Shown piece by piece: positions 7,386 to 42,817 of a DNA stretch of 64,000 nt. Each line of letters begins with the position of its first letter. The first letter of the stretch is position 1. The notes under the pieces were generated by a model, which was given only the letters and a program-made list of their open reading frames with translations, made no database searches and was not told the DNA's origin. The DNA is from Trichoplax adhaerens (lineage: Eukaryota > Animalia > Placozoa): the NCBI RefSeq assembly GCF_000150275.1, contig NW_002060949.1, positions 1,547,836 through 1,611,835 of the forward strand. Direction: 5' to 3'. Position numbers and translations under genes: made by a program.

Positions 7386-10300
7386 ATGAGTACAGCAACT
7401 ATTTCCGATCAACTAGTACTGACTACTGAGGCATTCCTTCTTACTTTCAACGTCGATCGAGCCCAATGTCTCCCATACAGTCGATTCAAGGTAATTTCAT
7501 ATTTAAAATATGAGAAGGAAATGGTAGTGATAGTTACCAAGTTACTGTTGTGTGTTTAATAAACAATGTTATATGATAGTTTCAATCAGTGGTTAGGTAC
7601 CATCTAAAAGCAATAATAAGTTATGGAATGGCTAGTGTAGTTAGTATGAATGTTATAAACAAGATTAAGAAGGCAGTGTATCTATAAAATTCATCGGTAA
7701 TACTAATTTAATATTTTAAACGACAATCTCCGGAAGCTAGAAGAGCATTTCAAGATAAGCTTAACTTTACTTATGGTAATATTTTGTTTTTACTGTTACT
7801 ACTTATTTCCGATTATAGAATTCTACTCTTAGCAATTTGGAGAGCATAACAATCATCAACATTACTGGTATAGGACAATTAACCGATATATTTTTAAGCC
7901 TACTACTAAAAAATTGTCCTAAAATAGCGACTTTGATCTGTGATGGATGTAACAACTTAACAGATGCTGTATTTCAGTCATTAATTGAATATTGCCAGGA
8001 TCTAACGACTATTAGCTTCAATTATTGCCCAAAATTAACGCATAAGGCACTACAGATATTAGGCAATTCAACATTAAAGCTCAAGAGTGCGTCATTTGTA
8101 TCTTGTAATATCATATACATCCCCTCAAATTTTGTCACATCAATAGCTAATCAAGATGGAGCTTACGATTTGAAAGGAAATCCAATCCTAAATATCGATC
8201 ATAAATATTTGAAGTGTGTCAATGTCAATTCTATCGAGGATAAAATATTCAAAAATGTTCATAAACAGGATATTAGTTTTAGGTAATTAAAGTCAATCAT
8301 AGTCGTTTATAATTATAAAATGGTAGAGAATGTAGTTACGCTATCGTAGCCATTTCCTCTTACATTGATATAACTTCTTCATCATGCATCTTACTATTCA
8401 TACTTATACAGAATTAATGTTATTGGCAATCGTGGAGTTGGAAAATCAACCTTTATAGCAAATTTATTGTCTTTTGCTAAGCAAACATCCAAAGATACCA
8501 ATAGCAATCATATTCTTCATCAAGAAATTAACTCAAATCTAACTATCGATTGGAATATAACAGAGTGCACAAGTCAGGTATAAATACGCGTATACATGCT
8601 TATATTTATGGTTACATCCTATCGCTTAAGTTTATCCAAAATAAGAGATAATTTCAATATAATAAAATTGAACAAAGAGTGGTAGCGAACAGTAAAAATC
8701 ATTCATTAATTAAATTTTAGTACTGAGATCGTAGTGTCATGAATCAGGAGTAATTGAAAATGAATATAACTACAATCCTGCCAATCTAGATGTACAGTAT
8801 ACGTACGATATTATTGCTTGTAAGGTGACTCATATCATAAATTCAGTATATAAATGTAATATAATCTTTGCAGGTAATCTGTATGGATGAATAGTTTATT
8901 CTTAATGCTATCATATAGTTTGATTATTCTTTGATTATTTTTTCACGATTTTAGGCTATGGCCTATCTTGCAACGGAGGAGTGCCCTCTTAATCTAATTA
9001 TGTTTGATTTGACAAACCCCGAATTCTTACATTGGTTAAATCTCGTAAATTATAAGGTTAATAACTCAACATTGGATAAGATAATGGATTGTTATCGTTA
9101 TTCATACTTACGTATAAAGTTACGTTGCTTCGTTTTATTATCTAGATAGCTAATCACAGATATTAGGAATGGGATTAACTTCATTTCGTATAATATCTTT
9201 CGTCTATCTATCAATAAAAAATTTAAACATTTTCCATTGTCTTGTATTTTTTAATAGTGCCCAAATAGTATAACTATTCTTGTTGGCACTCATGCTGAAG
9301 AATTTAATGACGCCTCCATGGAATGTGAATTAATTTATCAGAAAGTGGCAAACCCCAAAGATAGCCCGATAGAAGATCACTTATCGAAAGATAAATTGGA
9401 TCAGATATTGGCTTCAGCGTAAGTTAATTTCTAACATTGAAACGAAATATAATTGGGCTTCTAAAGATATACCGATGCCTAAGTTCAGTGGCTACGGAAC
9501 GAAACTTACACCTAATCATTATAATTATAATTAGTTTATAATAATTGATTGTTGATATCAATAATTACTATCGGTATAGCACATCAAATTATAACTGGTT
9601 ATTGTTTAGATGAAGAAGTACAGTAAGTATATCCCAACAACCACGCATTTGATAACCATTATTATCGAAACTTTAAGCCTTTTAACAATAAATCATTGAT
9701 TGCTATTGTAGTTATTATGGAGTGTAATTATAATTAATTTACGGGTTAATATTTACTATAAGAGATAATATATCTATCTTGTAATTTAATTAGAGACTGG
9801 ACTGAGGCAGTAGATTCTGACCTTGATAATCAAAGAAATGTGAAAGCTATTTGCGAATTAGCTAAATCTTCGACAAAGATTCACAAAAGCGTTTATGCGG
9901 TTAGCAACAGAAAAAATGACGAGGTTATTTACTAATTTTTATTGGAAAAATTATCTTATAACTGCTATTTGCATTAATAAAATAAATAGTTCATAATGCT
10001 AATGCGATTTAACATTAATATAATGAGAGGTATTAATAATTGATATGATTATAAATAGGAAATGGCAAAAATTTTAGACACTTTCTTACAATGTGGCAAA
10101 GAAATTTTCGATAATCAAGCTCAGCCATCCTATTCAGTATCGAAAGATTATGAAGAGCTCTATGAAGATATCCTGAATCTATCCAATCAATATCCTTACT
10201 TTCGATTTTCTAAACTTCACTTGACCTTATCGGAAAAATATGAATCTACCATGAAAAACAATCTATTGAAACCTATACTAAAGCATTTGCATCTTCAGGT

Positions 10301-13300
10301 TGATAAAACTTTAAAGTGTATTCGGTGTTAAAATATTTGTATTTGTGATTGATACGCACATAAAAGTATTAATACCTAAAAGGCCCGCCAGTAATGAAAA
10401 CTGAATCAAATCGCAATAAAAAATATTTTCAGTGTTATTATTGACTTTGGTCATACAGAATAGATTACATTTGAACTCATAGGATTTAATGGCGCATAAC
10501 CTGCTTATAAATGCAATGTTGTGATATTATTTCTTAAGTTAGGAACAGTGTATTCCAATCGTTTATAAATTATTAACATTCATTTCTGCATTTTTTATTC
10601 TTCTATCAATCAATTAGGGAAAGCTGTTCTTTTTAGACAACTTTGCTGATCCATTTGTTATTTTTAATAAGAGCTGGTTAAACCAATGTCTTACTAGTAA
10701 TATTCCTTACGATCAACATGTTGATGAAACATTCCAGGTATGAACATTAGTGATAGTATTTTAGAATTTTACCGTCACAGTATGCAATAAAGTCGTTCTA
10801 TCCTAAATGCGTCTTTACGTATAGTATATCGCTACTGACACATTTCAAATAATGTCCTGTATTATCTATCATGACGAGATATTAACTATTAATAAGCTAT
10901 TAAACAATAATAATTACTACAGGTGAACATCTCATCATTGTATATTAAATAGTGATAACTTTCTCCAATTGGAAATATAATTATGTGTCGTAGTCTGTTC
11001 TCCATCTTAATACCTGGCATACTACTAAATCATAACTTTTAAATAACATGATAGAGAAATATTGACGAACTGCCAATCAACACTGGAGCTTGTTATATAT
11101 CTTATTTCAACTACGACGCTATTAATGAAAGTAACGGAAAGACATATACTGCAGATTTGCCAGATTCATCGGGGCTAGACATGGTAAATATGAGTAGTTG
11201 ATTTGGATTATATTAGTATTTAAATAAAATAGATATATAAAAAGTAGATTGGAGAATAAAATTTAGTATGTAATCGCAACTACAGAGAATTCTAGCAATA
11301 ATATCTTATCCTATATGGATCTAACTCATCATGAAAGATTTTTTCGTGCTCACTAGATATTTAAATGAACCAAGCACATTAGATGTTACGTCCTAAGGAA
11401 TCTATATTGATTTATATTCAGAGTCTACCCTTAGAAACTTCAAAATATTTATAACTTTGTATAAAAGATTATTAGCGTTTAAACATTTAAATCATCAACA
11501 AAACTATTGAATGTTGTGATTCCAAAAGATGCATAATAATGTAAAGTAGCTATAAGTATTCACAGATTTTCGAAATATCCATAACTTTGCTTCGACAAAT
11601 TATTGGCTTTTAAATATTCAAATTAATGACACTATTGAATATTGGGATGATCAAAATGTGTAATAATTTACCGTGTTAATCAACATTTTAAAGTTTACAA
11701 GATGCTTGCGACTTTTAATTAGGAAAACTGTTGGCCTACAGTAGATGAAGCTGAATTTAGCACTGAAATCAAGTATACGATTTGGAACCTTCCTGTGATA
11801 GTGTTAAATCCTTTACTGGATAAAGCTATAGCACAGTGTTGTCGATTAGCTACTAATATAATTTTATCCTGGAAAGAAGGAGTACTCTTGCGATGTGGTC
11901 ATATTCAATGTCTAATTATAAGAAAAGATAACAGTAAAATCTTGGAAGATAAAAATATGACTTTGCAGTTATTTGCAAAATGTTATGATATCGATGACAA
12001 AGAAGAAATATGCCAAGAAAGTTTCTGGAATGTCGTATTGGATTTGGGATTATGTATCGAAGCAGTTCTGCATACTTCAAAGTTGATAGTCAAGGTAATG
12101 AGTTTATACTTACATCTTCAATATTTATATTTGGTTTCTCAGTTAAAAAATTGCACATTTGTCTTGCGTTATATTGGGCTCCATAATCATTACATAAGTG
12201 TAATAAATTTCCTATGCATGTAGTCATGCGATTAAAACTGATAAATCATGACTTTTAATATAAATTCTATCTAAAGTACATTTTAGTCCTTGGTATCCAA
12301 CTAATGCATGCTAATTAAATGAAAATTTTAGTCAGAGCTCAATCTCAGTCATATTTATGTTCAAATTTACGATCATAAAGAGATAGAGATTTAGATTTTA
12401 CTCAGAAATACCAAGTCATTTTTTAAATTTTGGTCAAATCTCTGACTCAGTCGTATTAGTATGCGAAGATACGTAGAGGAATGGCTACTATACCATAGGA
12501 TCGTAGTCTGCGTATGAATAGGTATTGCCTTTGCTGAGAAAAGGATCTCAAACATGGAGAGATTGAAATAGTACTTCTTACATTATTGTGAGCTGATTAG
12601 GTTAAAGTTGATTCTTCTTTCGTCCTGTTGCTTGTTTCAATGAATACTTGAAGGTTTTAGTATATACTAGTATTCTATTAATTATCGTAACAGTTTAATG
12701 AAAAAATGACTAACGATTGCCGTAGAGTAAAATAAGATCTTTGATTTATTATGCTAGAAAATTCTTTAATCATGAAAAGCTTATACCTTTATCTATAGAA
12801 AGAAGTAGCTTGTCCTAATTGCGTTAAAAATACAACATCGAAAATGCACTACCTTGGTATTAATGAAGTCAAGCAAACTCTGGCAAGCAATTCTGGTAAA
12901 GAATTAGTTTGTCAACAACAGAACAAGAGTATTTCTGTCCGTGATATACAATATTTTGGTAAGATTATCTTACTTCGTAACTATTGCATCATATCTTAAT
13001 GGCTATTTTCGGATATTTTAAGTACGAGCCGCGAGATTTTGTCGTCTGAAACTGATAAATTCTTTACTATTATTTGCCTAATCCTATAAACTTTACTTTC
13101 GAAAAAATAAATTTGATGTAAATCAATAGTATTACTCAGTTAAATTAATGTCATAAATGAGATCTAAAATTAGCAATTCAAGCCGTTTTAACTAAATTCT
13201 AACCCACTTTCAACAATTTTTATTAGTCAATGGCAAATCATCATTTTGCGTAGGCCATCGATTAAGTTATTCTAATGATACTTTAGGCTGTACACTGTGC

Positions 13301-16300
13301 AAAAGGTTTGTTAACATTATCAAAGAAATGCATTATACACTTTTAGAAGATATGAATTACGTTATTGGAACTGCTACTGACCATCTATTTCTCCTAAATT
13401 CAATCGTAGATATCCGAATTCCCTTATACCAGTGCTTTGTTGTCAAGACTGTGGTCGATGTCATCGCTGTCTTACCGACTTTAAAGTAAATCTTTATTTT
13501 TTAAATGATTAAATACATTTTTATACTTTATCCGTTCAATTATAATATTCAAGTAAGTATAGTATTCATTACAGTAATGTGTTTGATGACCTTTGCTGAT
13601 TTTATTTCAGTGGTTGAATAATTTAATCATTTTCTTGTGTAGAAATGTTATTTACTTATGGTTATATTATTTCATATAGGTATTAATGGAAAGTTTAGAA
13701 TGTAAAAAACTAATTAATCGCTCGTTCTGGAGCGAAACTAGCAATATTATAAGCATTGGCTCTGTTTTACAAGCCTGTGGTGAATATGCTTGCAGTGCTA
13801 TTGGTGCAGTCTCACTAGACACAATCTATCCAAATAAATTTGAATTTTCAGTGGATGCGCCGTTGTCTTCCGTCTTTTACTTCTATTTTGGCTTAGTATC
13901 GGAGCATCATGATAGTAGATTACCTCCAGGATTTACTGATAAATCTATTGGCTTCTCTTTAATCGATAATAAACTTTTTATTAACGCTAAAGAAACCGAT
14001 TACAGTCACCATGATACATCATTTCAATTGGGATCACATAATAAACTTTCTTGTTGTTTAGATCGGATATCACAAACTGAGGTAATGGGATAACAGTAGG
14101 ATGTGAAATTTTCTGAACAGCTCACGAAATATTAATTCTCATTTATATTTAATAGTATTTCTGTGGCATGGTCTTCCTATTTTATTCTATTGATCCTTAG
14201 CTTCGTTATGTTTAAATTTTATTTTATTTTAGGTTCGCGTATCATTCGTAGTGGACAGTATCATTATCGCATCTTTTGTGCATGAATATCACAATCAAGG
14301 GTATTACCCAATGATATTTTGTTCTCATGACTGTTCTCGATTATTTATTCATTCAACTATACCTGCAGTAAGTGTTGAAATTAGATTTTAAGTTGGACTT
14401 ATAGCATTAAATATTATAAAGGGCAGATATATATGTCATTAATATACAGATATGACATATAATCTAATAATTGTGATCATTTTCCGACTCTTTCGCACGG
14501 CAGATTGACCAAGTAGGAAAGCGAGCTGCTATACCGGTATCAAAAAGGAAAAATTATGTTGATATTGGTGTAGTTATTAAAGACTACAGCAAATTGGTAA
14601 GCTGTACATACATTAAGACTAGTATTTTTTAATATTTTCTGTATCCAGACTACTGATGATTTTAGTGAAAACCGATGATATATCATCAATCAATGACATC
14701 AATCTCAAAATAAATACAGTAATAGCCTTAACAGCGTACTTTACATGGACTAAATATCGCAGTGGATTAGATTCCTATTTCATCAAGATTGTCGCTATAT
14801 TGACAGAATTCCCTCTAGATACAAAATATAAATATAAACTCATTTCCTGCGACCTTTCCTGATATAAAAAGATATATTAAAATATGTTACTCTCTAATTA
14901 TATAAAAAATGATAAGATTGTCTATATTAGATTAGAATAAAATTGATCAATGATGATTGCAGTCATTACAAGTCAATCGTATGCCAATTTAGCTACTAAA
15001 TTGCTATACTATATTAATTAAAAGATTGGACTTTGATTGATACACGATAGAAGAAAATAGAGATAATTAATTAAAAAAGTCAGGCACTGAGTTGCCTGCT
15101 TGAGGCAATTTACATCTACGTAGTTTACTGTATTTTCTTCTCTACGATATTCGTCTTTCATAAAATGGTTTTCACGATTGGAATAATCATATTTATTTTA
15201 GTAAAATTATAAACCAAACAAGAAATATGACCGCTAATTGTTATTTATTTAGAATACCAATTATATAGCATCTTCGATTGGAGAGATTGTTCATATATTA
15301 GAAAAGACAAATAATGACCACTATAAAGCGAAAAATTTATCTGAACAGAGCGGTTTAATTCCTATAGACTGCATCAAGGTTTTATCCTCAAATAGTATTA
15401 GATAAAGATTTTAATGATTGAATTTAATATCATTATCATAACCTCTACTACTAAATGACTAATTTCAGAAAATATTGGCCATTGAGAAAGCTAGCTTACA
15501 AAAAGGAGATTGGATAGAATTTTTTGATGCAGCTGATAAAAGCAATGCTGAGGTCCACATCCTTCAAGTGAGTGCTGTTAAATTGCAAGAAATTGATGTT
15601 GAAATCCAAGTAGACTTGCAAAAAAAAGAGAAGCGAACGATTCCTATTGACAGTCCTAATATCCATCCACTTGGATGGGCTCTCTCAACAAAATATGAAG
15701 TCACTTCACCTACAGGTCTTTACTTTAATACCATATCAGCAGAATTTAGATTTCTGAAGGACTTGAGTTTTGTTCATTTAAGCTAAAGTATACTCTATCC
15801 TCTTATTAAACTAAACATGTCCCTTTATTTTCATTTGATATAGGTTATGTCTCCAAACTTACTAACGCTATTAGTGACGGTAAACTCTATTATAAGGGTC
15901 AACGAGTTGAAATAAAGTATTCCAGTAGTTGGTATAAAGGAACTGTGTTAAAGACGAGATATTGCGATACATTCAAGGTATGATAAATAAATGCAATATG
16001 ATAGCTTGCAGAATTGATATACAAACTTGATAAACTGTTAGAGAATTTCAATCGAGATATAAGTTTGATCTACTAGTGGTGTAGTTGATTTATATATAGG
16101 ATCTTTTCCATACCTTATTCACGTAAGGATTGAAAATGTGATATCTTTAATAGACGAGTTATGTGGATTCAGAATGGCATAGCGTAGCCAGAGTAAATTA
16201 ATTACTAGCATGAACCACAAGAAGTTTTCTTTTAGTATTTCGTATTTGTGATGGAGGGTTCAATATCTCAGAGTATTGAGATTTAGTCGCCATTTACAAT

Positions 16301-19300
16301 TATTACACCAAAGGGTTTATAAAAGTTATGCTTTATTGTAGGTTAGTAATGTGAAGTACAGTGAGGTAGTTACGGTAGATCAGCGTGCAAGCTGTCGTGA
16401 GTAACGAGTAGAAGTATTAGACTGTGAGAGGCAAACTAGAAGACTAACTGAGAGGCTAACGAACTCTGAGGTAGAAATCGCCGGTATTTATAGTTTTAAA
16501 GATAGAGCACATGCAGAGAATAGGATTGTGGAATTAGATACAACATATACCATAACAGGTTACAAAATAGCAGATGATTGTAGAAAAAAGCGAGTACCCT
16601 AATAACTAAATACAGTAGTCTATATATGAGTGTAGAGTAAGCGGACTGTAGATCTGTCTAAATATTAGAGCAATACAACATGTCTATATTTAAGAGTAGA
16701 ATATAGTTACAGTATATTCTAAATACACTACAATATTAATTGCTCCGGCATATTAACATGCAGTATAAAGGCTATTTATGCATAGAAGCACTAAACCCTA
16801 AAATCTTTCTCAGGTAAATCGATGCATTCAGAACACTATAAGGCAATCAAAATAAATCAATAGCGCGGATTATTAGAAGATTTGTTCTAGTACTCTCTAC
16901 TGATAGATACAGTTTACTAAGAAACAGTATAAAGCCTTTTGCAATATACAGCGATTAAATACTTTAGTCTTTTCAGACAATTCCATGTGTTTAATCTTTA
17001 ACTGTATTATGTAGCTAAGGTAAATTAATAGACAGACCATGCATGATTTTCTTCTAGTAGGCTATGCTAATAATTACAGTAAGCTAACATATAAAGCTAT
17101 TGTATAGAATGATTATGTATTTATTGTATATGAGCACAGCTTTATTGATTTAGTTAAGCATCAAAGTACTTTCCAACTCCTTGCTGTATCGAGAATACAC
17201 ATCTTATACTGTATATGCTATTCTAAGTACATATTAATCTACATAATACTATGTTAGGCTACAGTGCTGCATCATAATATGAAAGTAGCACTTCGTCTTA
17301 ATTATGTATAAATTGTATGTATGTATAGATATACGTCTAATTAGTTATACCATGGCTATACAATTACACGTTAATTACATATACTCGTACGTAAATCTTA
17401 ATAGCGTTTTTCACTACAATATTAAAGTTATTTTTCAGACAAATGCATCAGTAATAATATACAGCTGTCAAAGAAGATTATCATGCAAAAATTGTATCTA
17501 TGGATTTGTAACTGTAAATGTTGTCAACAATAATAAATGCTATTAAATTGGCGCATATAAAATACGAAAATACACGTATGCTGTTATAAGTAAATGATTA
17601 AAATTCTTTCATTCGTTGCTGAAATCATTTTTTATCAGATTCATTACGATGGCTGGCAAGATTCTTATGATGAGACGATAAGTCGAGAAGTATTAAGGGG
17701 TAGAGATAAGACAGCAATTTCACCCGATACTCCTATTAAAGTTGGCGATAAGGTGGAGGCTAAGTGGCATTCTACTTGGTATAAAGCAACAATTTTGCAG
17801 TGTTTCGAGAAAGAACAGGCAGCCTTCGTTAGATATGATGGTTATAGCTCCAGCTGGGATACTTGGTTCTCCGGTGATAGTCTTAAACCGTTAAAATCAA
17901 AGGATGATAGCGAAGGTAATAAAACTATAGACAATGCTTATCAGAATTTTGATAACGTAATTGCATCCTATCCTTCGTCCCATTATATATTTCTGATACA
18001 TAATGTAAATGACTATTGAATAATATCAGAGCGTAAAGGAAAACCATTAAATCTTATTGAATGTATACAAGCTGAAAATGGACGTCCAGCTCCGTGCTAC
18101 GCCTTTAATGAGGTTTGCATTTGCTTTCATTATTTCATATATTGGTACTTTATATATTTTGATACTTTATATATGTGTTATACTAAATGAAAATGTAAGT
18201 ATATAGCTATTATTCATTCTCGTTTCTGCTTTTAAATAGGAGCAAATAAGAATTAATCCAAAAAACTATCAATCTTGTCGTAGTATTCAAGGAAATTACT
18301 CAGGTTTGAAAGAAGATAATCGTATCCTAATATTCTACAACTAAGGTTACTTAATTTAGCGCTAATTTTTTATATCTATTAGCTGTACTACTAATAATGC
18401 TATCTCAGACACTGACCTAAACTATGATTATATGCCTACAATATATCAACTTAGAAAACTTTGTATATCATCTTTTTGCTTCATATGACGGATATTCTGC
18501 TTAGACGACAATATTAGCCCTTAATATAAAGATGATACAATAACGCCCGTGTTTAAAGAATATTCAGGGTGACAGAAATATTTTACTTCTGACTTTCAAC
18601 GTAATGAGCAGAACATCGATTACTTTTTATCGTTATCAGTAGATCGAGTTGTAATACTAATCTAGTTCGAGCCCTCCAAGTAATTGCATTGTAGCAGTTA
18701 ATTTACATTATTAAGAGTAGATTAAGTTTCAATCAGATAGCTTAAGTCCTTTGAATAGTAAAATATTTTGCAACAGCTGTACTTTAGATTGATATGAAAG
18801 CTCTCAGAGTATTTACTTCGTATATTGTAATTTCGTAGCGCCTACTATTCGTTGGTAGAATAGATCGAGTTCAAACTATCCAAGTGATTTGCTTTGCATA
18901 CACACAATTAAATTAGATATCTAATAGTTACTGTAAGTTCTCCGAGTACAAATTATATTGCCATAGAAATTGCTTTATATTATTACGTTTACATGAATTT
19001 TTCAAGAAACAAAAGTCTTATGCAATTATTATTAACTGTTAGTGATCGAGAGACTGTCAGAAAGAAACTTAGCTATCGTTCTGAAAGAGATACTGGATGC
19101 TAGACGGTGGCAATATCCTATTATGATGTTAACATTACCAGAATTTACTGATTTAATCCAATTAAGCTGCCCTATGCTGTCCCAGTTACAATATTGCCAA
19201 AGTTCAGTTGTTCACTGCTTATGCTATTCTCCAGGTAAATCGAAATAAATTTTTCTAGACAATTTTAAATCACATCTAGCCCTACGCTACATATATTCTC

Positions 19301-22300
19301 ATAATATCGCCCTACCCTAAATATTCTATGACAATTTAGCTAGTAAAAAATGCCGACCAATTTATCACAGGGTAGTACGTATTGGTTTACTTATTATGTA
19401 TTCTTAATTATATGCATTCTATGTAGGATTTCAACGTGGAATATCTCCGGCATTAGACCTGCATTTTCTTGCTAAGGAAGGTGATAAACTGGCTAAGAAA
19501 ATTAATTTTTTAAATCCTAGCCAAGAAGATGCTCCTCTTCTGTGGTTTATAACGACCCTTTGCAAAACTTCTGCAATGGTATAAAAAATTACTTGATACA
19601 GTATTTGTGTTGTCTGAGCTAGAAATACTTAACCTTCAAATAGTAATTAAAAAATTTTTCTCATATTTATGGTAATTGCACATTCTTGTAAATTTTCAGG
19701 ATTTAGTTGCCAGTACTGACGTTGCTGATGCGTTAGTAGGTACTAGCCTGGGACAAAACCCTGGTTTATCATTTCATCAAGTAAGGGCTGCACCTGTCTA
19801 CACATTATTACATTTATGTGTATACCAATAGCATCATTTACCTTTGGACCTGCAATTTAAAAATTTTTTAATCTTGTATCTATTCAGAAGTACTATTAAC
19901 AAAGCTATAGCGAATAAGTTTAACAATTATATATTTTAATTTAGATCCAAAGGGCAATCAGGGAAACTATTGATATGATTAAAGCTCAAACCCAATTTAG
20001 CATGTATTGCTACAATTTATTAGATAGAGCTTCCCGGCTACGGAAGGAAATCAAAGACAGCATTATGGTAAACGAGACTTAAACATACAATTATGAGAGA
20101 AACGTCACGTAGGACGAATAGACTATAATGGCAATACTTTCAAGTTATATGATAATTTAGCCACCATTAAGGAACGAAAAATCAATAATAGTTTTAGCCT
20201 TTACGTGTGGCTATTAAATTTCACACACTCATAAAGATTTGATCTATTTATAATTTTAACTTAATGTATAGGAAATAGCGGAATATTCACCACGAACTGC
20301 AGATAAATCTCATAGCCTTTTAAACAAGTATGATACTGGATATGGGCGCATTTTTGCATGTAACATTCACCATCAAGCAACTTTAAGCAGCAATTAACAA
20401 TTAGAACATTTCCCTATGTCACAGTGTACTTCTATGCCGACTTTGACTTATATTAACTTTTCTGATAATTGTATTACTCATCTACCAGCAGAATTCTTTC
20501 AGACATTTACTCAACTTCTGTCCTTGAACTTGAACGGAAATTTACTCTCTTGTTTACCTAAAGGGATTAGTAAATTGAAAAAATTAAAATATTTGAATTT
20601 ATCCAACAATAAATTGACCGATTTGCCCGACGATTTCAAAGATTGCAGTCGAAATTTGCAGGAGTTAAATCTTGCCAGCAATTACTTAACATCTTTACCT
20701 AATTATATTGGCAGCTTTATAAGCCTATTGGAGCTTGATCTTAGCTATAATCTCATTTCATCTTTACCCACCTCTCTATGCCGATTAACATCGTTAATAA
20801 CCTTAAATTTAGCAGGTCATCAACTCAAAGTACTACCATCGGGCTTAGATCAGTTATCATTATTGAAAAATTTAAATTTAAGTGGCATGCCAGTCATGGA
20901 GATTACTGAAGCATCGGTTTTACATCGAAATAACATGAGGGTTACATTAACCAAAGGTCAACCGAATCGACCTGTTAACGGATATGATAACGATGTAAGT
21001 AAATACAATATTCAAACGAATCTAATATAAAATTTTGGGTACCGTTACAATACAAGATATCATACAAGTATCGCTCGTATATGGTATCTCAAGGAGTATT
21101 AACCATTATTAACTTATTAACAGGATTATATAGATCTCTTTCAAGCTTGTGATGAAGATGGCAATCATGTTCTGGATTATCTAGAGTTAAATAAGCTGAA
21201 TAACCTGCTATTTACTAAAATTGTCCGTTTGAACGAAATGTTTGATGAGAATAATGACAATCAGCAAAATGCATGGCCAATATTGGGACTTAAGAATCTG
21301 GAGAATTTAACGCTAGATTACTTGCCTATAAGATCAATCCCTGAAGATTTTGGAAACTGTTTAACCAATTTGAAAACATTAAGTTTACGCCATTGCTTAC
21401 TATTGGAATCGTTACCAGCATCATTAGGGGGATTGCATCTAACAAAGCTAGAAATTGTTGGTACAGAAAAAATGAGAACTCCGCCACCTGAAATCACAGC
21501 TAGAGGATTAAATTCAGTGATGGCCTACTTAAAGCGCTTATCATATGGATCATCAGAATGTAAGCGTACCAAACTTATGATGGTAGGACTTGGAGGAGCT
21601 GGCAAAACTAGGTATAAAGGCGTATACATCTTATATAGTTTTATAGTAATCTTAACTGAATTTATAACATCTACTATGGCCGCGAAATTACGTTACTGAT
21701 ACTGTATATTTGTTCTATTCTTGCTATCATTTGTCCGGTGTATATATATACTTGTCTAATGTCTATCTTAATTCATTAATATTATTACATAAATACCTGA
21801 TAAATTTATGCCAGTAATTAGTTCTTGCCTCTTAAGGCAGTTATTAGTATAGTGTAAAATATGACAGAAATTTACCAATGACATTTTTTAATTAAAATTT
21901 TTTCCAGTCTGTCTCGGTCGTTAAGATCAGCTTCCTTTAGTGATAAAACAACTGGTGAAGAAGCCATTACTGATGGAATTGATATTGCCATTTGGACTGT
22001 TGAAACACCTGATAAACAAAAAATTGAATATAGTTTATGGGATTTCGCAGGACAGACATTATATTATAATACACATCAGGTTAGAATAGAATTAATTTGA
22101 AATAGCTTATCTTTATTAACTAATTAATATACAGTATTCTCTGATAACAGACATACTATACGTTGCAATGATAAAACTTAATGATAATATCTTAATATTA
22201 TTTATTATCCATATATAGTTTTTCTTATCCAATCGTGCAGTGTACCTGCTGGTTTGGAATACACGTCTTGGCTACGAGCATGCTGGTTTGGAATTTTGGC

Positions 22301-25300
22301 TTAGCTCTATATCTTGTCATGCCCCAGAAGCTCCGATTTTTGTTGTTGGTACACATTGTGATAAAGTAAGTACGGAAGAAAATGAAAACTAAAATAGACC
22401 AGAAGTTAAACTATCAAAATTTTATTAGTATTAATTGTAAAGTAAGCTTTAGTTCTGAACAATTAACAAGGTTGAAAAAAGTGAAATACCAAAAGGTCGC
22501 CTCCAAAAGTTTTATCCGCAGATCCAAGGCTTTTTTACAGTTAGCTCAGCAACTGGCCAAGTTAGTATTATAGATTAGCAGTGCCCTAATGAATTCATTA
22601 TAGGAACAAAATCTTTGACTTTTACTAAATCGCATTCTTTAGACCTTCCTAAAAACTTTGTCATAGAGCGATACCACGATAGAGTCAATTAGTAAACTGG
22701 AAGGCATAAATAGTCTCTAATTACATAATTAAATTTCTAGTTTATCTTCGTCGTAAACGATATCATTTTTCAATTTACGGAGCAAGTTTTGCATCATCTG
22801 GTCTTGTAAGTCCAATTATTTTGATACCTTTAGGGCATCCAAAAACTTTATGGCGATTTAATCGCTGTTACGTTGAAGCAAAAGTACATGGGTGAAAAAA
22901 TTCCAAACATTTGGTTGGAGTATGAGAACTCTATTATAAGGTGAAATAGTTTGGAAGTCCTGTAAATTAAATTCATTATGAGATGTAAATATAGAAATTA
23001 CTTAAAATAATTTTCCAGTAAGAGGTTTACTATCAGGCTTAATCTTTGATATTTGCCTATTCTAGATAAGCTTTAGATGGTACATGACTTTACATTTATA
23101 AAAATGAAAATATTAATATATTAAATCGTTAAATAAATTAATAGCTGCCGTAATAGGAGTAGTGTCCTATCGTGGAAGGAGATAACAGAAATTGCTTGCA
23201 ACCATGGAATTTTCCAAGATGATGAAGTAATTTCTATATGATAATTAATTGGATTCTCATGTATGTGTTTGAAACTGAAATTTATAGAGATAGTAAAACA
23301 ACAAATCTCCTTCTCGGTTGCCCTCTTTAGCATCTTAAGTAGTTCAGTGACATCCCATTTTAATTACCGTAAAGCAAGTGTAGAAACAGCTTTGCAGTAT
23401 TGCTTATACATGAACCAACGCCAATTTGATTAGGTATACAAATAAATAGCATACGCATTATGAAAATAAACCTCATGTTTAATCATAGGAGAGAGCATGT
23501 GAAAACACGAGCAGTTTAATGGAGTCCGTTGTGTAACTCGGAATGCTAACAATTGCTCATCATCAACTACAGTAATCGCATATTTCCATTGCATTAACTA
23601 TATAGACATAAAATTAGACTAAAATATGCGCAGATAATATTAGAAAAATTACCATTACCTAAATGCGATCGATACTAATCAACTACTTCTATACGTTATT
23701 AACTATCACTTCTTAATTAAAATTATTACGATATGTTATTAGATTCGCGAAGCTGTCAAGTTACTAACAGATCTTGGATCAATCCAACATTTCGATACGG
23801 AAATGTTAAGAGAGGTAGTTGTAATCAATCCTCAGTGGATTGTAGATGTTATGGCTTGCGTTGTATCGGTCCACGATAGCCCTATAAAGGTAATTATGTA
23901 AGGGAAATCAACCATTACCTTTTAAAATATTTAACTTACAGTTATACCTATCGGCAACTTCTATCTAACAGTGAATGTTGTAACTGAATTCATGTTTGCA
24001 TTGCTTCTTATTAATGGTAAAAGACCGACTTCATATAATTCATTATTTTATAGAATGGTCGATTTCATCATAGTGACATGCAAAAGATTTGGTCAAAATA
24101 TAATTCCAACTTACATAAATGGTTATTGGGCCTGACTGAACAATTCGATCTAAGCTTCTCACTACCTAATAAAAGCACTAATTTAGTTCCATGCTTGTTA
24201 AACGATGATGACGAAGAAGTAAGTATTTTATTTTTCAATACAAGTGCTTGAAAGTTTTAAAAATCGGATGCAAATTATAAGATTGAATCCAAACTTGTTT
24301 TATTTCACGTTCTTCAAATTTTACTTCGTTATTAGACTGATGATTTAGATAAAGAAACCTTAGAAATGGACGGTATGAAGGAAACTAAAATGGTTTATAC
24401 TTTTCAGTATCTGCCAGCAGGTTTATTTAATCGACTGCAGGTATGACCATGTTATAACGTTACTTTTCACATCCAGCTATAGTTAAAAGGATTTAGAATT
24501 TTGATGAACGAATCATAACATTAGGTCATAATGCAAATTTTGTTACTTTGTAAATGTTAGGTTCGGCTATGTGAATTTACTGAAGACCAAACTATTAGCA
24601 AGCGAGGATCCAAATTAAAGAAGAATGGAAATTTTGCCGTCTTAAAACAATCAGAGTTAGTGATATAGCTAAAATTTCTTGTTTGACCTTTTTAGATATT
24701 AGATTAAACCTTTCATGGCTGTCATGTGAGAAATTAATTTTTTATATAGTCTTTTGAAACTCATATGGTCTCAAATAGCTAAAATTTCCCATTTAATTCT
24801 TTCTAGACTTGAAATTAAGAGTTTTTTAGTTCTATTTAAATGTATTGATTTATTTATAAGTACTTAGCCTCAAGGTAAAACTTGCATTATCAAGATTTAT
24901 CAGAATTTCACGTTTAATCTTCTCTAGAAGCAGAGTTAAAAGTTTTGCTTACTTGAAAGCAATAGATTTATTTATATACAGTTCATTTAAGATAGTAAAT
25001 ATAATGTAAAAGAAAACAATCTATCAATTTACTGACATCTCCCAATCTATATGACTAACATTACTACCTTATCGATAATATCATGAATACCGAAATTAGG
25101 GCATTAAAATACGAGTATTGATTACAGTCGCACTCGGCTAACAGCCAGATTTACTGGAATTATTTAAGATTTCTTAGTAAATAAGAGTTTGATAATTAGC
25201 ATTTAATTATATCTGGAACATTCATACGCCTATAATCACAAATTGCCTTCCTTGCGACAACTGAAATTATATGTCCAAAATTAGAATTTCATTTTAATTT

Positions 25301-28300
25301 ATTTGCACACTTATCAGTTTGAAATTCACTCATAATCAGCTGTTTACGAGTTAATGACGAATTACCATGCGTTTGCTTACCTTCTTGTGTCATAAGAGAT
25401 TACTCACCTTTAATAACTGGAATTATTGATCAGAGAATGATTTAAGATTATAAAGTATACTTACTGATCTATTTATTTCATATAATGGCAATAGAAATAA
25501 CTTAATAGACCTTAACGTCAATGGTTTACGACCTGAAAATATGCTGTATCTAGTCAATGAGGTTTTGGAATCGTTAACTGCAGACGCTTTTCATGGCGTT
25601 CATTTTTACTATTTGGTACCTTGCCCTCACTGTTTACAAAATGTAAAGTTAACAAGTTTTATTTACTTTAGAGCTAGATTATAATTGAGTTTTGAAATGT
25701 TAAATGCTAATATGAGATCATGTTTTTGCATGATGGCGTAGGGATCTCGCGATCCATCCATGTTTTCTTCTAAGCGAATACGTAGGGCAAGAGAAGTCAA
25801 GGCGATATTTCTGCAATGCGATGCCAATTTCCATACAGTTTCCATTTCAGAGTTAGAAAGTATGGCATTATTTCTACTTAAAACTATGTTATAACTTAAT
25901 CTTGTGATCCTGATTACACAAATTTTGCAAGATGGAGATGCTTGAATGCATACTAAGATTATAAATACAATATATATACTATATTTGATACCAAAATCAA
26001 GGAATCTTACCACCAACATCCAGTGATGAATTCGACGTTCACTTACAAAATGCAATGCAAGGCTTGGATGCTTTAAGCGATAGTATTATGACAGACGTAT
26101 ACGTAAGTTACTGCGAAGATGATTTACCTGCAGAAGAAAATTCTAATGAAACATTACATGTCAAGAGACTGATGAAATCACTAGAGGGTGAAGGCTATAA
26201 ATGGTAAACAGAATAGCGATTTTAATAATACTCTCCAGTAAAATGAAATATTAAGAGTTTCTACATAGAAAACAGATGTTGGCTAATGTCATTTAATATT
26301 TAAAATTAATTTATGATTAAGCTATTCTCTAAGAATACGTTGCTTTTTATTGCTCCTGTGAACAAAGTGTTTCTAATAAAAATCTTACCTTTATTAACTC
26401 ATGAGTTGTTAAAAATTATATCAATGTAGACGATGGAGATATGTAAAAATTGATATTGATATAAATTTTGATTTAATAGCGATGCTAGAGATTATCGAGA
26501 AAACTATAGCCTAGAAAATATAGCTGTTGGAATGAAACAGTCACGAGTAAGTTCGTAGTCTATCCCTAGATAGCTTCTAGGTTACAACTTTCATGAAATA
26601 ATTTCGAATGCATCTAACCCACTTACGCTATTTTAATGAGAGTCTAAATCAAAATATGTTTGATGTTGAAGAAATAATATCTATTTTAGGTCGATAATAG
26701 CTACTTTAATGTTAATAATAGTGCGCAAATTTTAGCCAAATATCCATGTGAATGTTTCTTTATTTAAACTGAAAATTCGAGGAGATAATAATCAATCAAT
26801 CTGATTTCTAATCATTGCTCAATTTAGGCTATTATAATTATGTTGTCTGATAATTATGAACGTAATGAACAGTGCCGATCTGAATTCTCTCATGCTTATG
26901 AACTGTTAAAAAAACCAATCATTTTAGCGGTTATTGGTAAAACTAATAATTGGACAAAAACAAATCTTGGCTTTCTTGTATCTAGTATGGTAAGAAGTGA
27001 ATATCATAAGCCTAAAACTGTTTTCTTTGTTCATACATAGGCATTCTTTAAAAATTTTATATGTTATTTCACATAATGCTGTTACTAATATGATATATTT
27101 TATCTACCAGTTATATATAGATTTTTCCAATATGCAATTATACAATGAGAAACTAGATGAAATTATTGATCAAGTAGAAAAAAAGACCCATAAGAAAGTG
27201 GTAAGCATATAATCATTAGTTAATTTAAATAAACATATTAAATGGAAGGCTTTCATCACGAGTAATAACACCTACTAATTGGGTTTCATTATTGATTTTA
27301 TACGTGAATATATATTATTGATTTCTTTCCTTTAGCAACATTTGCAGCAGACGGATTGCTTTATTAGTTACTGCTGGAAAAATTCAGCCAATGCTTGCGA
27401 ATTAGGAATTCAGCAGGTGGATGGTGCAATTGGAAAAGGTTTGTGAACTATCCGGCTAATATAATGTAAATCTATATTGAACTCACACTTTCAACTAATA
27501 AATTGAACGCGTCTAAGTTTTCAAAGTCTTTTGTAGCCGATATAGACGGGATTAACTTTAAATTATGTGTCTTGAACTGCTAATAGCTAAATTGTTTATA
27601 TGAATTAATATAATTAATCTAATTTGCACATTTACTATAATTCTCATAATGGCAGTTGATCCTAGAGACTTGAAGGATCAACTGAAAGCAAAGGGAATAA
27701 CTTGTTGGATGGACATAGAACAGCTAGGAAAGGTATTAGCACATCCATTACTCAGAAGAAATAAGTTTTTATAAAAACTTGCAGATGATTCATTATGAAT
27801 TTTCTATACTTTTTTTAAAAGATTAAATACTTGAAAGTTATCGTAATTGACTTGATCTACTTATATGCAAACTAACCAACGTTTAAATATTTGTGGTATT
27901 GGTATAACTTTCTTCAGGCGGGTTTATTTGAAGAAATTTCCATTGGTCTACGGAAATCAAAATTGTTTGTAGCTTGTGTTTCCGATGAGGTAAAGCTAGC
28001 TTTGACATAATAGTTTATGTATGTTATATTATCGGTTGCAGATGGTTTTATAACATAATATTAATTTACTAGAACTTCTCTAATAACTTTGCTTTATAAC
28101 AATAATTTGCTCTATTAGATTAGGTATCATTTATTAAATTTCTTCGTTCGCTTTTAATAGTACGTGAAATCCAATAATTGCATAATGGAATTTCGGTTTG
28201 CTGTGACTACATTACGACTACCAACCGTTTTAGCCATTATAGGAACAGGCATCAAATGGCAGTATTCAGAAGTACGAATAGGATGAGATTACTTTAATTT

Positions 28301-30619
28301 TTTATTATAAGTTTATGTAAGGGTTTCAATTAAAAAACTTTAAAGTATAGCTAGCTGAAGAATAATTTTATTGTCGACGGGTATTTTATAGGTTGGAATG
28401 TTGGCAGCTAATTTGCCCATGGTAAGTGCCATATTCTTTTACAGTAATTAATTAAGTTAAATTAAATAAATGAATAAAAAATAATTATTAAATCCTTAAA
28501 ATCTTTTTATATATACTTGTACAGTTCAATTTGCAAGGAAATGATTCAGAAATGTCGTCCGAAAAACTTCTATCATTCATAGTGGAGAAAATTTCTACTT
28601 TAATCAAGCCCGAAGACAATCTATTGACAACAGCCCCTAATATTGGAAAGGAAAGGAAATTACAGGACCGATCAGCCCAATTTCAGGTAAATTTAATGGA
28701 TAGTAAATAACTGCAGTGAAAGTTACATTGTTACGTAAAATCATTATTACTGCTGATAAAATTTGCGACATGATACTACGAGACACAGTATATCGACATC
28801 TGATATGCTGACACTGCTAGATACAGAAATAATTTTGAATTTTATCGCTATAAGAATATCAAGTGGTTGATTCTTAATATTATAATGTTTAAGAGATTAA
28901 TCTGGCATGATTTAGATTATTGTATCAAATTCATAACTTACGCTAAGTGATATTGTTTTATTTATAAAATCTTGATTAAGTAATTGCTTTCTCTACGATT
29001 TAATTACATATTATCGATGCAATATTCACTTATATTTTGTAAGGTAAAATGATATCATTGAGAAATATTGCGGTGAATTTAAGAAATTTTTATTCTTATA
29101 GGAAATGCTTGAATTAGCACAGCGAAATTTAATTCGCCAAGTCAGCAGTGTAGCTAATAGAATATCGACATCGTACCCTCGGCTATTCCTCATCGATTGG
29201 GAAGATAAACATGACGTAATATACGTATATTGCGGATAACTTATTTGACTGAATTTTCATTTAACTATGATATTAAAATACGGTTAACAAGCATTTTAAA
29301 TCGCATTAAATTCGAGATGTGTTGTTACTATTTAGTAATTGATACTAAAAATTGTGTATTAAACAATCAATAGATTTACAAACTGCTTTCAACTATCGTC
29401 TGTGTCAGTCTGATAGTCATAATTAATGAAGTAAAATTAAAATTTACTCCATCATGAATACTATCAATATCGAAATAGGAATCTTTGCAACTGATCCAAT
29501 TTTATCAACTTAGGGATCAGCAAATTTGGAATCCTCTAGAGAGTATTACATAAAAGTATTATGTGAGCATGAAGAGGTAAATTGCGTTACAGATATTATT
29601 ATGATGTCTTATGTCGCATTTAGTGCAGATAACTGGATGATTTTCTAATAGACAAAAATATTAATAGATTAAAAGGCAAGCGTAAAATGAGTAAAGGTTA
29701 CGCATAGAATTGCTATATATTATTCATACGATTAATTGGATAATTTTTATTTCAGGGTTGGCATTGTCCAGAAAGTGGAGGCACATTTCCCATCCCAGGT
29801 GGTTCATCACAAATGAAATTGTTGGTAAAAAATACAGCAAAACATTTACTTCGAGTTATGTCTATCATGAAGCACAACAATACAGGATTTAATTCACTTA
29901 ATCAATCGAATGAAGATGAATTTTTTGATTATGTAGCATCGGTATGTTACAGAGTTTATATTATAAATGTTATAAATTCCAACTTTCAACAAAATTAATT
30001 TATAATCAAATGATTAACCAATTATCCCTCCCTCCTTTACTAGGCTGCTAAATCAAGTGATCTTAATATCGGACTTAATTTTACATCTTTCATATCATTT
30101 ATGGATGAATTAAAAATTGAAAATATCGGATTATCAAGGTTAGTAGATAGATTCACTAACTATAGCTCGCTAACCATAAAAATTTTAAGTACGTATAACT
30201 GGTGTTGACTTCTGTCTTTAACTGTTCTTTTCTTGTTTCTATGCAAATAACTAGTATGTGTGCTTTATATCCAGTTTGTGCACTGCTCCACTGTGATCAT
30301 CTTCAATCATACTAAAGCTATTAATTGTAGTAATCAATTTCAATTTTGTTGTTCTATCAAATATAGGACTCATCTTCCGAATGGTAAAGTGTTATGGTTA
30401 TGCGACAAGCATAAAGCTGCTAAACATTTTACTTTAGATCATCTAGGTAGTGACTCATCGAATCAACAAGCCAAGCAGATTAATCATGTCGCTGATGTTC
30501 AACAACCAAGTGTTACATTGGCAAAGCCAAGGACTAAATTTGCAGCAGCTGCAGTTACTGTAGCGGCATCCCAGGGATTATCCAAGAGTTCAAAGTCTAG
30601 CGTTTGCTCTGTTATGTAA
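7386..30619 (+). CDS. Giant multidomain kinase-less ROCO protein (two Roc-COR modules, SPRY, SH3, MBT, Tudor x2, LRR/EF-hand, TIR x2, CaaX); about 54 exons, about 2,900 aa
   Basis: Manual exon chain with GT-AG introns and compatible phases: 7386-7490, 7819-8282, 8412-8577, 8955-9056, 9258-9418, 9794-9923, 10059-10298, 10618-10737, 11055-11183, 11723-12094, 12799-12958, 13287-13305, 13410-13485, 13680-14081, 14233-14367, 14504-14596, 15253-15378, 15469-15715, 15844-15977, 17639-17915, 18030-18112, 18240-18303, 19043-19234, 19427-19578, 19700-19780, 19945-20067, 20272-20994, 21124-21611, 21908-22079, 22219-22365, 22471-22560, 22834-22940, 23145-23226, 23743-23889, 24054-24218, 24336-24440, 24561-24655, 25495-25642, 25742-25859, 26002-26203, 26480-26546, 26828-26989, 27111-27200, 27336-27438, 27656-27732, 27918-27989, 28161-28271, 28392-28421, 28525-28686, 29102-29215, 29514-29576, 29756-29941, 30044-30138, 30367-30619. 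Sum is 8727 nt, divisible by 3. The first exon is the least certain. Confidence 0.85.
7819..8282 (+). other. N-terminal Cys-containing (FBXL/AMN1-type) leucine-rich repeats of the ROCO gene
   Basis: NCPKIATLICDGCNNLTD / YCQDLTTISFNYCPKLTH repeats of about 26 aa, ending LKGNPI just before the Roc-like domain. Confidence 0.75.
8412..12958 (+). other. First (degenerate) Roc-COR module
   Basis: P-loop RINVIGNRGVGKST (8425-8451); G3 position reads ITECTSQ; G4 ILVGTHAE; G5 YAVSN; COR-like marks LKHLHLQGKL, VIFNKSWL, WKEGVLL, VACPNC. Confidence 0.7.
13680..14367 (+). other. SPRY-like domain
   Basis: KFEFSV...FYFGLV...LPPGFTDKSIGFSLIDNKLF...KLSCCLD...VSFVVD...YYPMI follows the SPRY pattern YFEV..IGL..LPGW..SxGY..IGCGxD..FFxxNG..LYPxV. 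Confidence 0.7.
14564..15378 (+). other. SH3-like domain (two exons)
   Basis: GVVIKDYSKL|NTNYIASSIGEIVHILEKTNNDHYKAKNLSEQSGLIPIDCIK. Confidence 0.65.
15469..15715 (+). other. MBT-like repeat
   Basis: LQKGDWIEFFD...IDSPNIHPLGWALSTKYEVTSP matches the MBT signature DSPxIHPVGWC. Confidence 0.65.
15844..17915 (+). other. Tandem Tudor/Agenet (chromo-barrel-like) domains
   Basis: YYKGQRVEIKYSSSWYKGTVL...KIHYDGWQDSYDETI and KVGDKVEAKWHSTWYKATIL...FVRYDGYSSSWDTWF. Confidence 0.75.
20416..21540 (+). other. Typical 23-aa LRR array with an inserted EF-hand
   Basis: LxxLxxLNLSxNxLxxLP repeats; EF loop DEDGNHVLDYLE at 21151-21186; ends TPPPEITARGLNSVMAYLKRL, the usual ROCO LRR-to-Roc hinge. Confidence 0.9.
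21565..25859 (+). other. Second (canonical) Roc GTPase and COR domain
   Basis: [107 protein letters not shown]. Confidence 0.93.
24665..24985. repeat. Degenerate intronic tandem repeat, about 110-120-bp period
   Basis: ATAGCTAAAATTTC... recurs near 24665 and 24775, with a diverged third copy near 24900. Confidence 0.5.
26090..28421 (+). other. Two tandem TIR (TIR_2-like) domains
   Basis: TIR1: DVYVSYC...IAVGMKQSRAIIIMLSDNYERNEQCRSEF...PIILAVIG. TIR2: DCFISYCW...GITCWMDIE...EEISIGLRKSKLFVACVSDEYVKSNNCIMEF. Confidence 0.85.

Positions 30620-39392: not shown

Positions 39393-42817
<3,425 letters not shown>

Follow-up and report, generated by a model that had tools for sequence, protein, structure and literature searches.

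A 64,000-nt stretch of the Trichoplax adhaerens genome (NCBI RefSeq assembly GCF_000150275.1, contig NW_002060949.1, forward-strand positions 1,547,836 to 1,611,835; hereafter the window, G000:C1408:1547836-1611835 in our numbering) carries one large multi-exon gene that fills the plus strand of window positions 7386-30619, and RNA contigs establish that this locus is expressed as one spliced gene. From its predicted translation, we give a confidence of roughly 60% to the overall explanation set out below, a cytosolic ROCO-family protein of ~2,900 residues that combines several binding domains, a Roc-COR GTPase switch, two TIR domains and a predicted C-terminal CaaX lipid anchor. Taken apart from any mechanism, the gene structure and the order of its domains are very likely as given here. 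Coordinates are those of the window unless a contig is named. Family scans, profile comparisons and fold predictions took each exon singly, and genome-wide profile scans covered 105.6 Mb on 1,414 contigs.

RNA contigs from four runs of four studies were compared with the window over 15230-21200. Spliced contigs were present in three runs of three studies (X7, X10 and X8) and define 11 joints between 15376 and 21124, while the fourth run, X5, contributed short unspliced contigs only. A twelfth joint, 14596|15253, is supported by loose contig ends in X7, X10 and X8 that match window 14566-14595. With the contig offsets applied, all RNA-supported introns (12/12) begin with GT and end with AG, and the 11 RNA-confirmed exons are all phase-compatible. 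A first-pass annotation, made from the letters alone, had singled out two introns as the places where a single-gene model should be checked, and both were borne out to the base: intron 15978-17638 (1,661 nt) by the joint 15977|17639 in X10 and X8, and intron 18304-19042 by the joint 18303|19043 in X7, X10 and X8. That annotation had also allowed that transcripts ending between the Tudor region and the second leucine-rich repeat (LRR) array would split the locus into two genes; spliced RNA instead joins the Royal-family region to the LRR part, and the single gene stands. Between 15252 in the SH3 exon and 20625 in the second LRR array, record 1 of X10 (3,879 nt) is spliced at each of the joints, and record 16 of X8 likewise spans the joint 15977|17639. 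A further ~2,045 nt of X10 record 1 lie upstream of 15230 and, if collinear with our exon model, would reach the N-terminal G domain.

The middle of the gene, where most of this RNA support falls, contains the following features.

14504-14596 and 15253-15378, plus strand: SH3 domain (SH3_2 at the family cut-off; joint in X7, X10 and X8).
15469..15715, plus strand: MBT repeat (Pfam MBT; RNA-confirmed exon).
15844..17915, plus strand: two Royal-family barrels, the first split by intron 15978-17638 (Pfam; RNA joint).
16247..16733, no strand assigned: dispersed, non-protein repeat of ~487 bp inside the long intron (genome matches).
18030..20067, plus strand: six RNA-confirmed exons without a recognised domain (RNA joints).

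The first Royal barrel is divided by the 1,661-nt intron, its first half lying in exon 15844-15977 (Chromo_MORC2, E 6e-4) and its second half, which carries the motif HYDGW, opening at the first codon of exon 17639 (MSL3_chromo-like, 34.4 bits against a cut-off of 28). Because the two halves of one domain lie on either side of this intron, they argue for one gene independently of the RNA, and a paralog with the same order of parts, described below, argues for it as well. The second barrel matches Tudor-knot (26.7 bits against 20.8) and the MBT repeat its Pfam family (30.6 bits against 22; 97.2 bits in the paralog). SH3_2 scores 21.8 bits, equal to its cut-off, on the second exon alone, which encodes the C-terminal two thirds of the domain, the beginning being encoded by the exon before it. 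The SH3, MBT and two Tudor domains read by eye in the first pass were thus recovered, three of the four above their family cut-offs and the SH3 domain at it. Of the six exons in 18030-20067, the three scanned with Pfam (19043-19234, 19427-19578 and 19945-20067) had no match.

The closest relative of the Tudor exon is at an unrelated locus (G000:C1380:385721-386008, minus strand; L005:7724-8011), with 42% identity and matches to Agenet, Tudor_4 and MSL3 chromo-like families. The Royal cassette, for which the paralog has no match, may have come from this locus or be its sibling. A first look through the genome for the repeat within the long intron gave 225 candidates, of which the 39 scored outside the window are 96-98% identical; the repeat also shows very high contig depth and many loose ends in the RNA runs. 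Neither inverted repeats nor an Rfam family were found for it, and we take it to be a young interspersed element.

Two alternative explanations bear directly on the joint across the long intron. The first is that a chimeric RNA assembly falsely joined two neighbouring genes, given that the evidence comes from contigs rather than raw reads and that a contig running across two genes is not a transcript. Set against this, two runs from two studies show the joint as a canonical GT..AG splice; it lies within one Royal barrel, it keeps the reading phase and the paralog has the same part order, so that we consider a false fusion extremely improbable. The second is that the locus has two promoters, one of them within the long intron, where a second transcript would start no further downstream than 17350; this shorter form may then predominate, leaving the 2,900-residue form as a minor isoform. 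Translation of the shorter form from an in-frame ATG at 17594 would give ~1,770 residues comprising half a barrel, the Tudor domain, the LRR array, Roc-COR, both TIRs and the CaaX end. Record 15 of X7 runs unspliced through 17350-17913 and is then spliced downstream, the ATG at 17594 is in frame with exon 17639, and contigs downstream are deeper than those upstream by 3.7x in X8 (100 vs 27.3) and by 6.9x in X7 (51.8 vs 7.5). Contigs cannot show transcript starts, however, and depth is one figure per contig; the stretch 17350-17638 could equally be a retained intron, and the contig breaks in X8 adjoin a polymorphic site at 17665. In X10 a single contig of even depth spans both halves, and the short isoform would open with a truncated Royal barrel. 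A dominant internal promoter is therefore unlikely in our view, although it is the more serious of the two challenges to a mainly full-length product.

For the full-length gene, exons were placed by a small dynamic-programming procedure in which the RNA joints were fixed and homology to the paralog and to contigs of a relative entered as a bonus. The working model has 52 exons and 8,712 nt, giving 2,903 codons plus a stop between an ATG at 7386 and the stop at 30617-30619. All of its introns are GT..AG (51/51), with a median length of 194 nt, and codons split by introns are never stops. The first-pass estimate of ~2,900 residues therefore holds, and its ~54 exons come close to the 52 modelled. 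At the G+C content of the window (~31%), a chance open stretch would be ~13 codons, and the plus strand between 7.4 and 30.6 kb has open frames of 155, 166, 137, 141, 210 and 192 codons among many. Exon boundaries outside 14597-21123 are predictions, and small exons there may be missing or misplaced. The locus is bounded by neighbouring genes on both sides, and the rest of the window includes an assembly gap of 50 N at 57426-57475.

2429-2839, minus strand: MIB_HERC2 gene, upstream neighbour (57.8 bits).
36425-36827, plus strand: RIO1 kinase gene, downstream neighbour (51 and 44 bits).
39396-41251, minus strand: PCMT-like methyltransferase with SOCS box, downstream neighbour (55 bits).

Comparison with two other loci extends the support beyond the RNA-covered region. 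A HMMER search with exon 11723-12220 over 1.84 billion representative proteins found one relative, a 139-aa fragment with 62% identity that maps to two contigs (L001 and L002) of genomic sequence from a different sample; a full-length model of this gene, or of its counterpart in a sister strain, was not among the results. These contigs keep exons 9762 to 14090 in order at 40-67% amino acid identity, and this ordered conservation indicates that N-terminal exons without a recognised domain are coding. Within the T. adhaerens genome itself, the same exon had one distant match, 2.7 Mb downstream. There, at G000:C1408:~4241200-4258400 (loci L003/L007/L004/L008), lies a paralog that is collinear with the window gene over its whole length. 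Both genes encode a Cys-containing (CC-type) LRR region, a degenerate G module, a COR-B-like domain, a Cys cluster, a SPRY-like domain and an MBT repeat, followed by an LRR array, a putative EF-hand, Roc, COR-A/B, two predicted TIRs, a tail module and a CaaX box. Unlike the window gene, the paralog has lost the P-loop of its N-terminal module, has no match to the window's Tudor exon, and ends in a long acidic tail with the CaaX box CILL rather than CSVM; its MBT repeat is nearer the consensus (97 vs 31 bits).

Downstream of the Royal barrels, the gene continues into the LRR array and the putative switch.

20272..20994, plus strand: LRR array exon with an in-frame TAA (LRR_8, 78.6 bits; contiguous in RNA).
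21124..21611, plus strand: EF-hand loop, more LRRs, and the Roc P-loop at the exon end (LRR_1/LRR_8; direct reading).
21908..22560, plus strand: canonical Roc GTPase (Pfam Roc on two exons).
22834..25859, plus strand: COR-A and COR-B (Pfam; the genome-wide scan places COR-A here).

The first of these exons has an in-frame TAA at 20395-20397, at about codon 1519 of the model, within an RNA-confirmed exon and frame. It is the sole in-frame stop of the model besides the terminal one, and the first-pass claim that the exons run without a stop thus fails for the reference assembly. At 20396, every RNA contig of X7, X10 and X8 that covers the site has T instead of A, changing the codon to TTA (Leu). 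The sequenced individual could carry a nonsense allele, or the gene could be decaying, with the protein cut short after ~1,519 residues and so lacking the main LRR array, Roc-COR and the TIRs; the frame of the exon is confirmed by RNA, and no second copy of this exon was found in the assembly. Against such a loss, every covering contig, from three runs and two organism codes, encodes Leu at this position, and the 1,385 codons after the TAA are open in the model and conserved with the paralog. It is simpler to suppose that the reference has one wrong base or is heterozygous at this site, with a nonsense allele beside an open one, and these are the likeliest causes; that the copy is a nonsense allele outright or a decaying gene is improbable.

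In the Roc domain encoded downstream of the LRR array, the switch motifs G1 (GLGGAGKT), G3 (DFAGQ) and G4 (GTHCD) are all intact. Pfam Roc was matched on two exons with 27.4 and 24.6 bits over profile positions 20-75 and 75-119, the best PDB match of a Roc exon was the Roc domain of LRRK2 (E 1.5e-5), and identity to the paralog was 67-80%. COR-A scored 37.9 and 45.2 bits (cut-off 35.3) and COR-B 43.1 bits (cut-off 27), with another exon at 19.3 bits; a COR-A exon searched against the PDB gave a chance match only. The second LRR array and the canonical Roc-COR unit that had been read from the sequence were accordingly all recovered as LRR_8, Roc, COR-A and COR-B matches, with the switch motifs unbroken. 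The EF-hand loop between the LRRs, DEDGNHVLDYLE, fits the pattern DxDxNxxxDxxE, and the paralog loop reads DTNANGILDTQE. With Pfam E-values of 0.11-0.14 and a single hand rather than a pair, this putative calcium site is a lead only.

The genome-wide scan returned 54 COR-A matches, mostly in uninterrupted open frames of 700-800 aa (for example, C1392:14373-38210, C1404:939555-969314, and on C1372, C1389, C1383 and C1375); about half of the 20 examined begin at or near a P-loop, and several lie in tandem clusters. At another locus combining ROCO and TIR domains (G000:C1410:4252004-4254959, minus strand; L006), which lacks close similarity to the window gene, a strong single-exon TIR_2 match (86 bits) follows a COR-A exon (38.6 bits) located 2.4 kb upstream.

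The C-terminal part of the gene comprises the following.

26002-26203, 26480-26546 and 26828-26989, plus strand: TIR domain 1 (TIR_2, hhalign and PDB matches).
27336-27438, 27656-27732, 27918-27989 and 28161-28271, plus strand: TIR domain 2 (weak TIR_2; cross-match).
28525..30138, plus strand: conserved C-terminal module between TIR2 and the CaaX tail (paralog matches, L004:8957-9637).
30367..30619, plus strand: last exon, with CaaX box CSVM at 30605-30616 and stop at 30617-30619 (translation).

Each TIR exon scored below the Pfam cut-off when taken singly, and the window locus is absent from the list of the genome-wide TIR_2 scan. In TIR1, exon 26828-27037 matched TIR_2 with E 0.011 and 16.7 bits (cut-off 28) over profile positions 54-94, and the orthologous exon of the paralog with E 0.015 and 16.3 bits over positions 50-93. 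A TIR2 exon matched positions 15-34 (E 0.13, 13.2 bits), and the beta-A exons align to positions 1-14, so that the TIR exons fall in order on profile positions 1-14, 15-34 and 54-94. While phmmer searches of single TIR exons against the PDB gave nothing, a four-sequence profile (A4) of the beta-C/alpha-C exon had the TLR10 and TLR2 TIR domains among its only four PDB matches. Aligned by hhalign to a bona fide Trichoplax TIR (86 bits), this profile gave E 1.2e-5 and a probability of 81% over positions 54-94. A glutamate in the alpha-C region, within CRSEF and CIMEF, is shared by the two TIRs and aligns with that of the reference TIR. Exon 28161 of TIR2 cross-matches TIR1 of the paralog, and such cross-matches between TIR1 and TIR2 exons point to an internal duplication. 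The proposal of two TIR domains is therefore backed by collinearity and profile comparison, though not by any per-exon match above the family cut-off. Three TIR_2 matches within 2.8 kb, 1.1 Mb downstream of the window gene (G000:C1408:2667871-2670635, plus strand), may represent another twin-TIR gene.

Between TIR2 and the tail, the C-terminal module had no Pfam match in either the window gene or the paralog, and its exons 29102-29215 and 29756-29941 are 57% and 26% identical, respectively, to those of the paralog. The CaaX end noticed in the first pass is confirmed as CSVM directly before the stop. In the paralog, CILL and a stop codon close a long acidic tail that is otherwise unrelated to that of the window gene, and the fact that both genes keep a CaaX box although their tails have diverged is the strongest sign in these data that the predicted lipid anchor is of importance. 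By its X residue, CILL is of the geranylgeranyl type and CSVM of the farnesyl type. No transmembrane-like stretch was found in the model translation outside the domain cores.

In the gene's N-terminal half, the features are as follows.

7386..7490, plus strand: predicted first exon with the ATG at 7386 (exon model alone).
7819..8282, plus strand: CC-type LRR exon (155-codon open frame; paralog match).
8412-8577, 8955-9056 and 9258-9418, plus strand: degenerate Ras/Roc-like G domain (Walker A; weak Roc and Rab matches).
9794..11183, plus strand: four exons at the expected COR-A position (conserved in the relative; without a family match).
11723..12094, plus strand: COR-B-like domain of the N-terminal module (AlphaFold2 model; structural matches).
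12799..13485, plus strand: Cys-rich region with CPNC, CTLC and a C-x2-C-x2-C-x2-C cluster (exon translations).
13680-14081 and 14233-14367, plus strand: SPRY/Neuralized-like beta domain (Atlas feature search).

Exon 7819-8282 is 29-31% identical in the paralog (E 1.7e-11), and its LRR type was read from the sequence, the Pfam match being weak (LRR_RPS2, E 0.05). The G domain that follows keeps an intact Walker A motif (GNRGVGKS) and matches Pfam Roc with E 0.01 and 16.5 bits (cut-off 27) over profile positions 1-57, and the best PDB sequence matches of its P-loop exon were the N-termini of Rab GTPases (E 0.011-0.3). Its G3-like motif reads FDLTN and its G4-like motif VGTHAEE, where the Roc-typical THxD would be expected. 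Exon 8955-9056 is conserved in the paralog, while the exon with VGTHAEE had neither a Pfam match nor a PDB match by phmmer. At the position expected for COR-A, exons 9794-11183 share 40-54% amino acid identity with the relative's contigs L001/L002, but they had no Pfam match, and the genome-wide COR-A scan placed none here.

The AlphaFold2 model of 11723-12094 (predicted local distance difference test [pLDDT] 74; predicted template modelling score [pTM] 0.68) had COR-B of the C. tepidum Roco protein as its top three structural matches (6hlu, 3dpt and 3dpu; Z 9.9-10.1; root-mean-square deviation 2.4-2.5 over 96-99 residues), with LRRK2 COR-B at Z 8.3-8.6. Foldseek gave no match for this model at E <= 0.001, and VIA re-alignment alone separated the COR-B matches; the exon had no Pfam COR-B match and no usable match in the Atlas feature search. 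It is 59-65% identical to the relative and 27% to the paralog, and the next exon starts with CPNC, paralleling the CPHC that follows the canonical COR-B. A profile built from 20 intronless Roc-COR open reading frames of this genome found nothing significant on the N-terminal module; even the canonical Roc-COR lay too far from it (best E 2e-4). We conclude that the N-terminal part is probably a degenerate G domain followed by a COR-B-like domain. The degenerate Roc-COR proposed here in the first pass is moderately supported in these two elements, while its COR-A was not found by the Pfam and genome-wide scans, and a complete second Roc-COR unit is not upheld.

The Cys-rich region is conserved in the relative, the paralog has a similar cluster (CxxCGRCxxC), and the Pfam match is weak (Zn_ribbon_ZPR1, E 0.004). 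For the SPRY-like exons, the nearest Atlas clusters were Neuralized (0.93) and SPRY (0.89). These exons had no Pfam match; the domain is 67% identical in the relative and has a paralogous exon, and the AlphaFold2 model of a SPRY-like exon is all-beta with low confidence (pLDDT 48). The SPRY call is accordingly a lead only.

Taken together, these parts suggest how the protein might work. Prenylation of the CaaX end would tether it to a membrane. By analogy with bacterial Roco proteins and LRRK2, the intact Roc-COR unit would act as a GTP-dependent conformational and dimerisation switch, whose state may be set or read by the two sets of LRRs, the SPRY-like, SH3 and Royal domains, and calcium binding at the EF-hand. 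The output would be the state of the tandem TIR pair, which may either form TIR-TIR assemblies with other TIR proteins or cleave NAD+ in the manner of SARM1. The N-terminal G/COR module, having lost G3 and G4, is most likely a non-catalytic scaffold or an intramolecular partner of the active Roc-COR. This mechanism is tentative and, taken as a whole, is rather more likely to need revision in some part than to be right throughout. A bolder version holds that the protein is a lipid-anchored TIR executioner or signalling enzyme gated by the Roc GTPase in place of a STAND ATPase, with the methyl-lysine readers MBT and Tudor as cytosolic sensors and the N-terminal G/COR-B module replacing the second protomer of the usual ROCO dimer in an intramolecular pseudo-dimer. 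If true, animals would have in it a counterpart of TIR-NLRs that relies on another kind of switch, but we regard it as a long shot.

Several observations, in addition to the contig depths, the unspliced X7 record and the in-frame TAA discussed above, weigh against the ROCO-TIR protein and mechanism that we favour. The 5' end (7386-8282) lies upstream of the region covered by the RNA comparison, and the TIR, SPRY, EF-hand and N-terminal G/COR calls all fall below family cut-offs exon by exon. The COR-B match of the N-terminal model stands only ~0.4 Z above an unrelated alpha/beta fold. Since the alpha-C glutamate is also found in TLR TIR domains, which are not known as NADases, its presence is no proof of NADase activity.

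A further alternative accepts the anatomy and questions the role. The protein may be not an immune or cell death receptor at all but an LRRK2-like ROCO for membrane trafficking or scaffolding, in which the TIR, SH3, SPRY-like and Royal domains are plain interaction modules without pathogen sensing or NADase activity. A CaaX anchor suits membrane biology, and to our knowledge, no animal ROCO protein that has been tested is a pathogen receptor. There are also only two paralogs, and the exons of one relative are 40-67% identical at the protein level, a pattern that fits neither large, fast-turnover immune receptor families nor this genome's other COR-A loci, of which there are >50. Animal TIR domains, on the other hand, are almost confined to immune and death signalling. 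The literature files this protein among TIR candidates for immune adaptor or regulator roles (Kamm et al. 2019, PMC6321704). A trafficking or scaffolding role is unlikely in our view, and an immune role is itself a guess that we share with the literature. The first-pass reading of a sensor, a GTP switch and an effector on one chain, analogous to TIR-NLRs, is plausible at the level of analogy; its anatomy is supported by spliced RNA, the split barrel and the collinear paralog. As for the NLR/STAND class itself, Pfam NACHT and NB-ARC models gave only a P-loop-level NACHT match (E 0.12), and in the absence of either domain, the protein is not a member and could at most work in a similar way.

The gene and its broad architecture were already known from a published ROCO repertoire and a pair of LRR/TIR proteins of ~3,000 aa. 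According to the first study, T. adhaerens has at least 17 ROCO genes; MBT, SH3, LRR, CARD and TIR domains are attached to its ROC-COR proteins (legend of Fig. 1), and some of its ROCO proteins carry a Ras-like domain N-terminal of ROC, giving two G domains per chain (Civiero et al. 2014, PMC4104024). That repertoire rests on the 2008 gene models, whose coverage of multi-domain genes has been called less complete (Kamm et al. 2019, PMC6321704), and its "at least 17" compares with, and is far exceeded by, the 54 COR-A matches found here. According to Kamm et al. 2019, only two placozoan proteins combine TIR and LRR domains; both are ~3,000 aa long, lack a transmembrane domain, contain several other domains and were assigned to "ecTIR-DC 14 II" in the classification of Gerdol et al. 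2017, a class said to be widespread in invertebrates (PMC6321704). This Trichoplax sp. H2 pair agrees with our two collinear loci in count, in size, in LRR plus TIR content and in the missing transmembrane domain. The window gene is therefore most likely the same gene as one of the H2 pair in a sister strain, a match drawn from locus count, size and domains rather than from an accession. The suggestion of novelty made in the first pass was overstated, as such proteins had already been described by Civiero et al. 2014 and Kamm et al. 2019. In its accessible text, the latter neither reads the pair as ROCO proteins nor gives them a mechanism, a lipid anchor or an N-terminal pseudo-module (PMC6321704), and the accessible portions of the placozoan ROCO/TIR literature examined hold no mention of the N-terminal COR-B-like fold, the CaaX box in both paralogs, the intron-split barrel, the TAA of the reference or a possible internal start. 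Outside animals, a TPR-ROCO-TIR fusion is found in the red alga Chondrus crispus, and brown-algal LRR-ROCO proteins have been proposed as immune receptors (Teng et al. 2024, PMC11378527). These algal proteins are far simpler and belong to unrelated lineages, and no description of them includes Royal domains, SH3, a CaaX box or a second G/COR module (PMC11378527).

Compared with better-known proteins, the window gene shares the order LRR-Roc-COR-A-COR-B with human MFHAS1/MASL1 and LRRK2 and has G1, G3 and the THxD G4 intact. No kinase, WD40, ANK or ARM domain was detected in it, and its additions to the MFHAS1/LRRK2 plan are SH3 and Royal domains, a SPRY-like domain, a second G/COR module in degenerate form, a predicted TIR pair and CaaX. 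Like SARM1 and plant TIR-NLRs, it places predicted TIR domains with an alpha-C glutamate at one end of a large multi-domain regulator. Its putative switch, in contrast, is a Roc GTPase rather than the STAND ATPase of TIR-NLRs or the ARM/SAM octamer of SARM1.

ROCO GTPases such as LRRK2 and DAPK1 and TIR enzymes such as SARM1 and the plant TIR-NLRs are central to disease and immunity, and how each is switched is debated. What we add for the placozoan gene is incremental: transcripts prove a single gene, its exons are modelled to the base, the reference is shown to carry an in-frame stop, structure prediction supports a second, degenerate G/COR-B module, and CaaX is retained in both paralogs. 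Rather than a new kind of protein, this is a naturally occurring fusion between a Roc switch and TIR domains that has gone unstudied. With Roc-COR wired to a TIR pair in an animal of few cell types, it would let one ask whether a G-protein switch gates TIR assembly or NAD+ cleavage.

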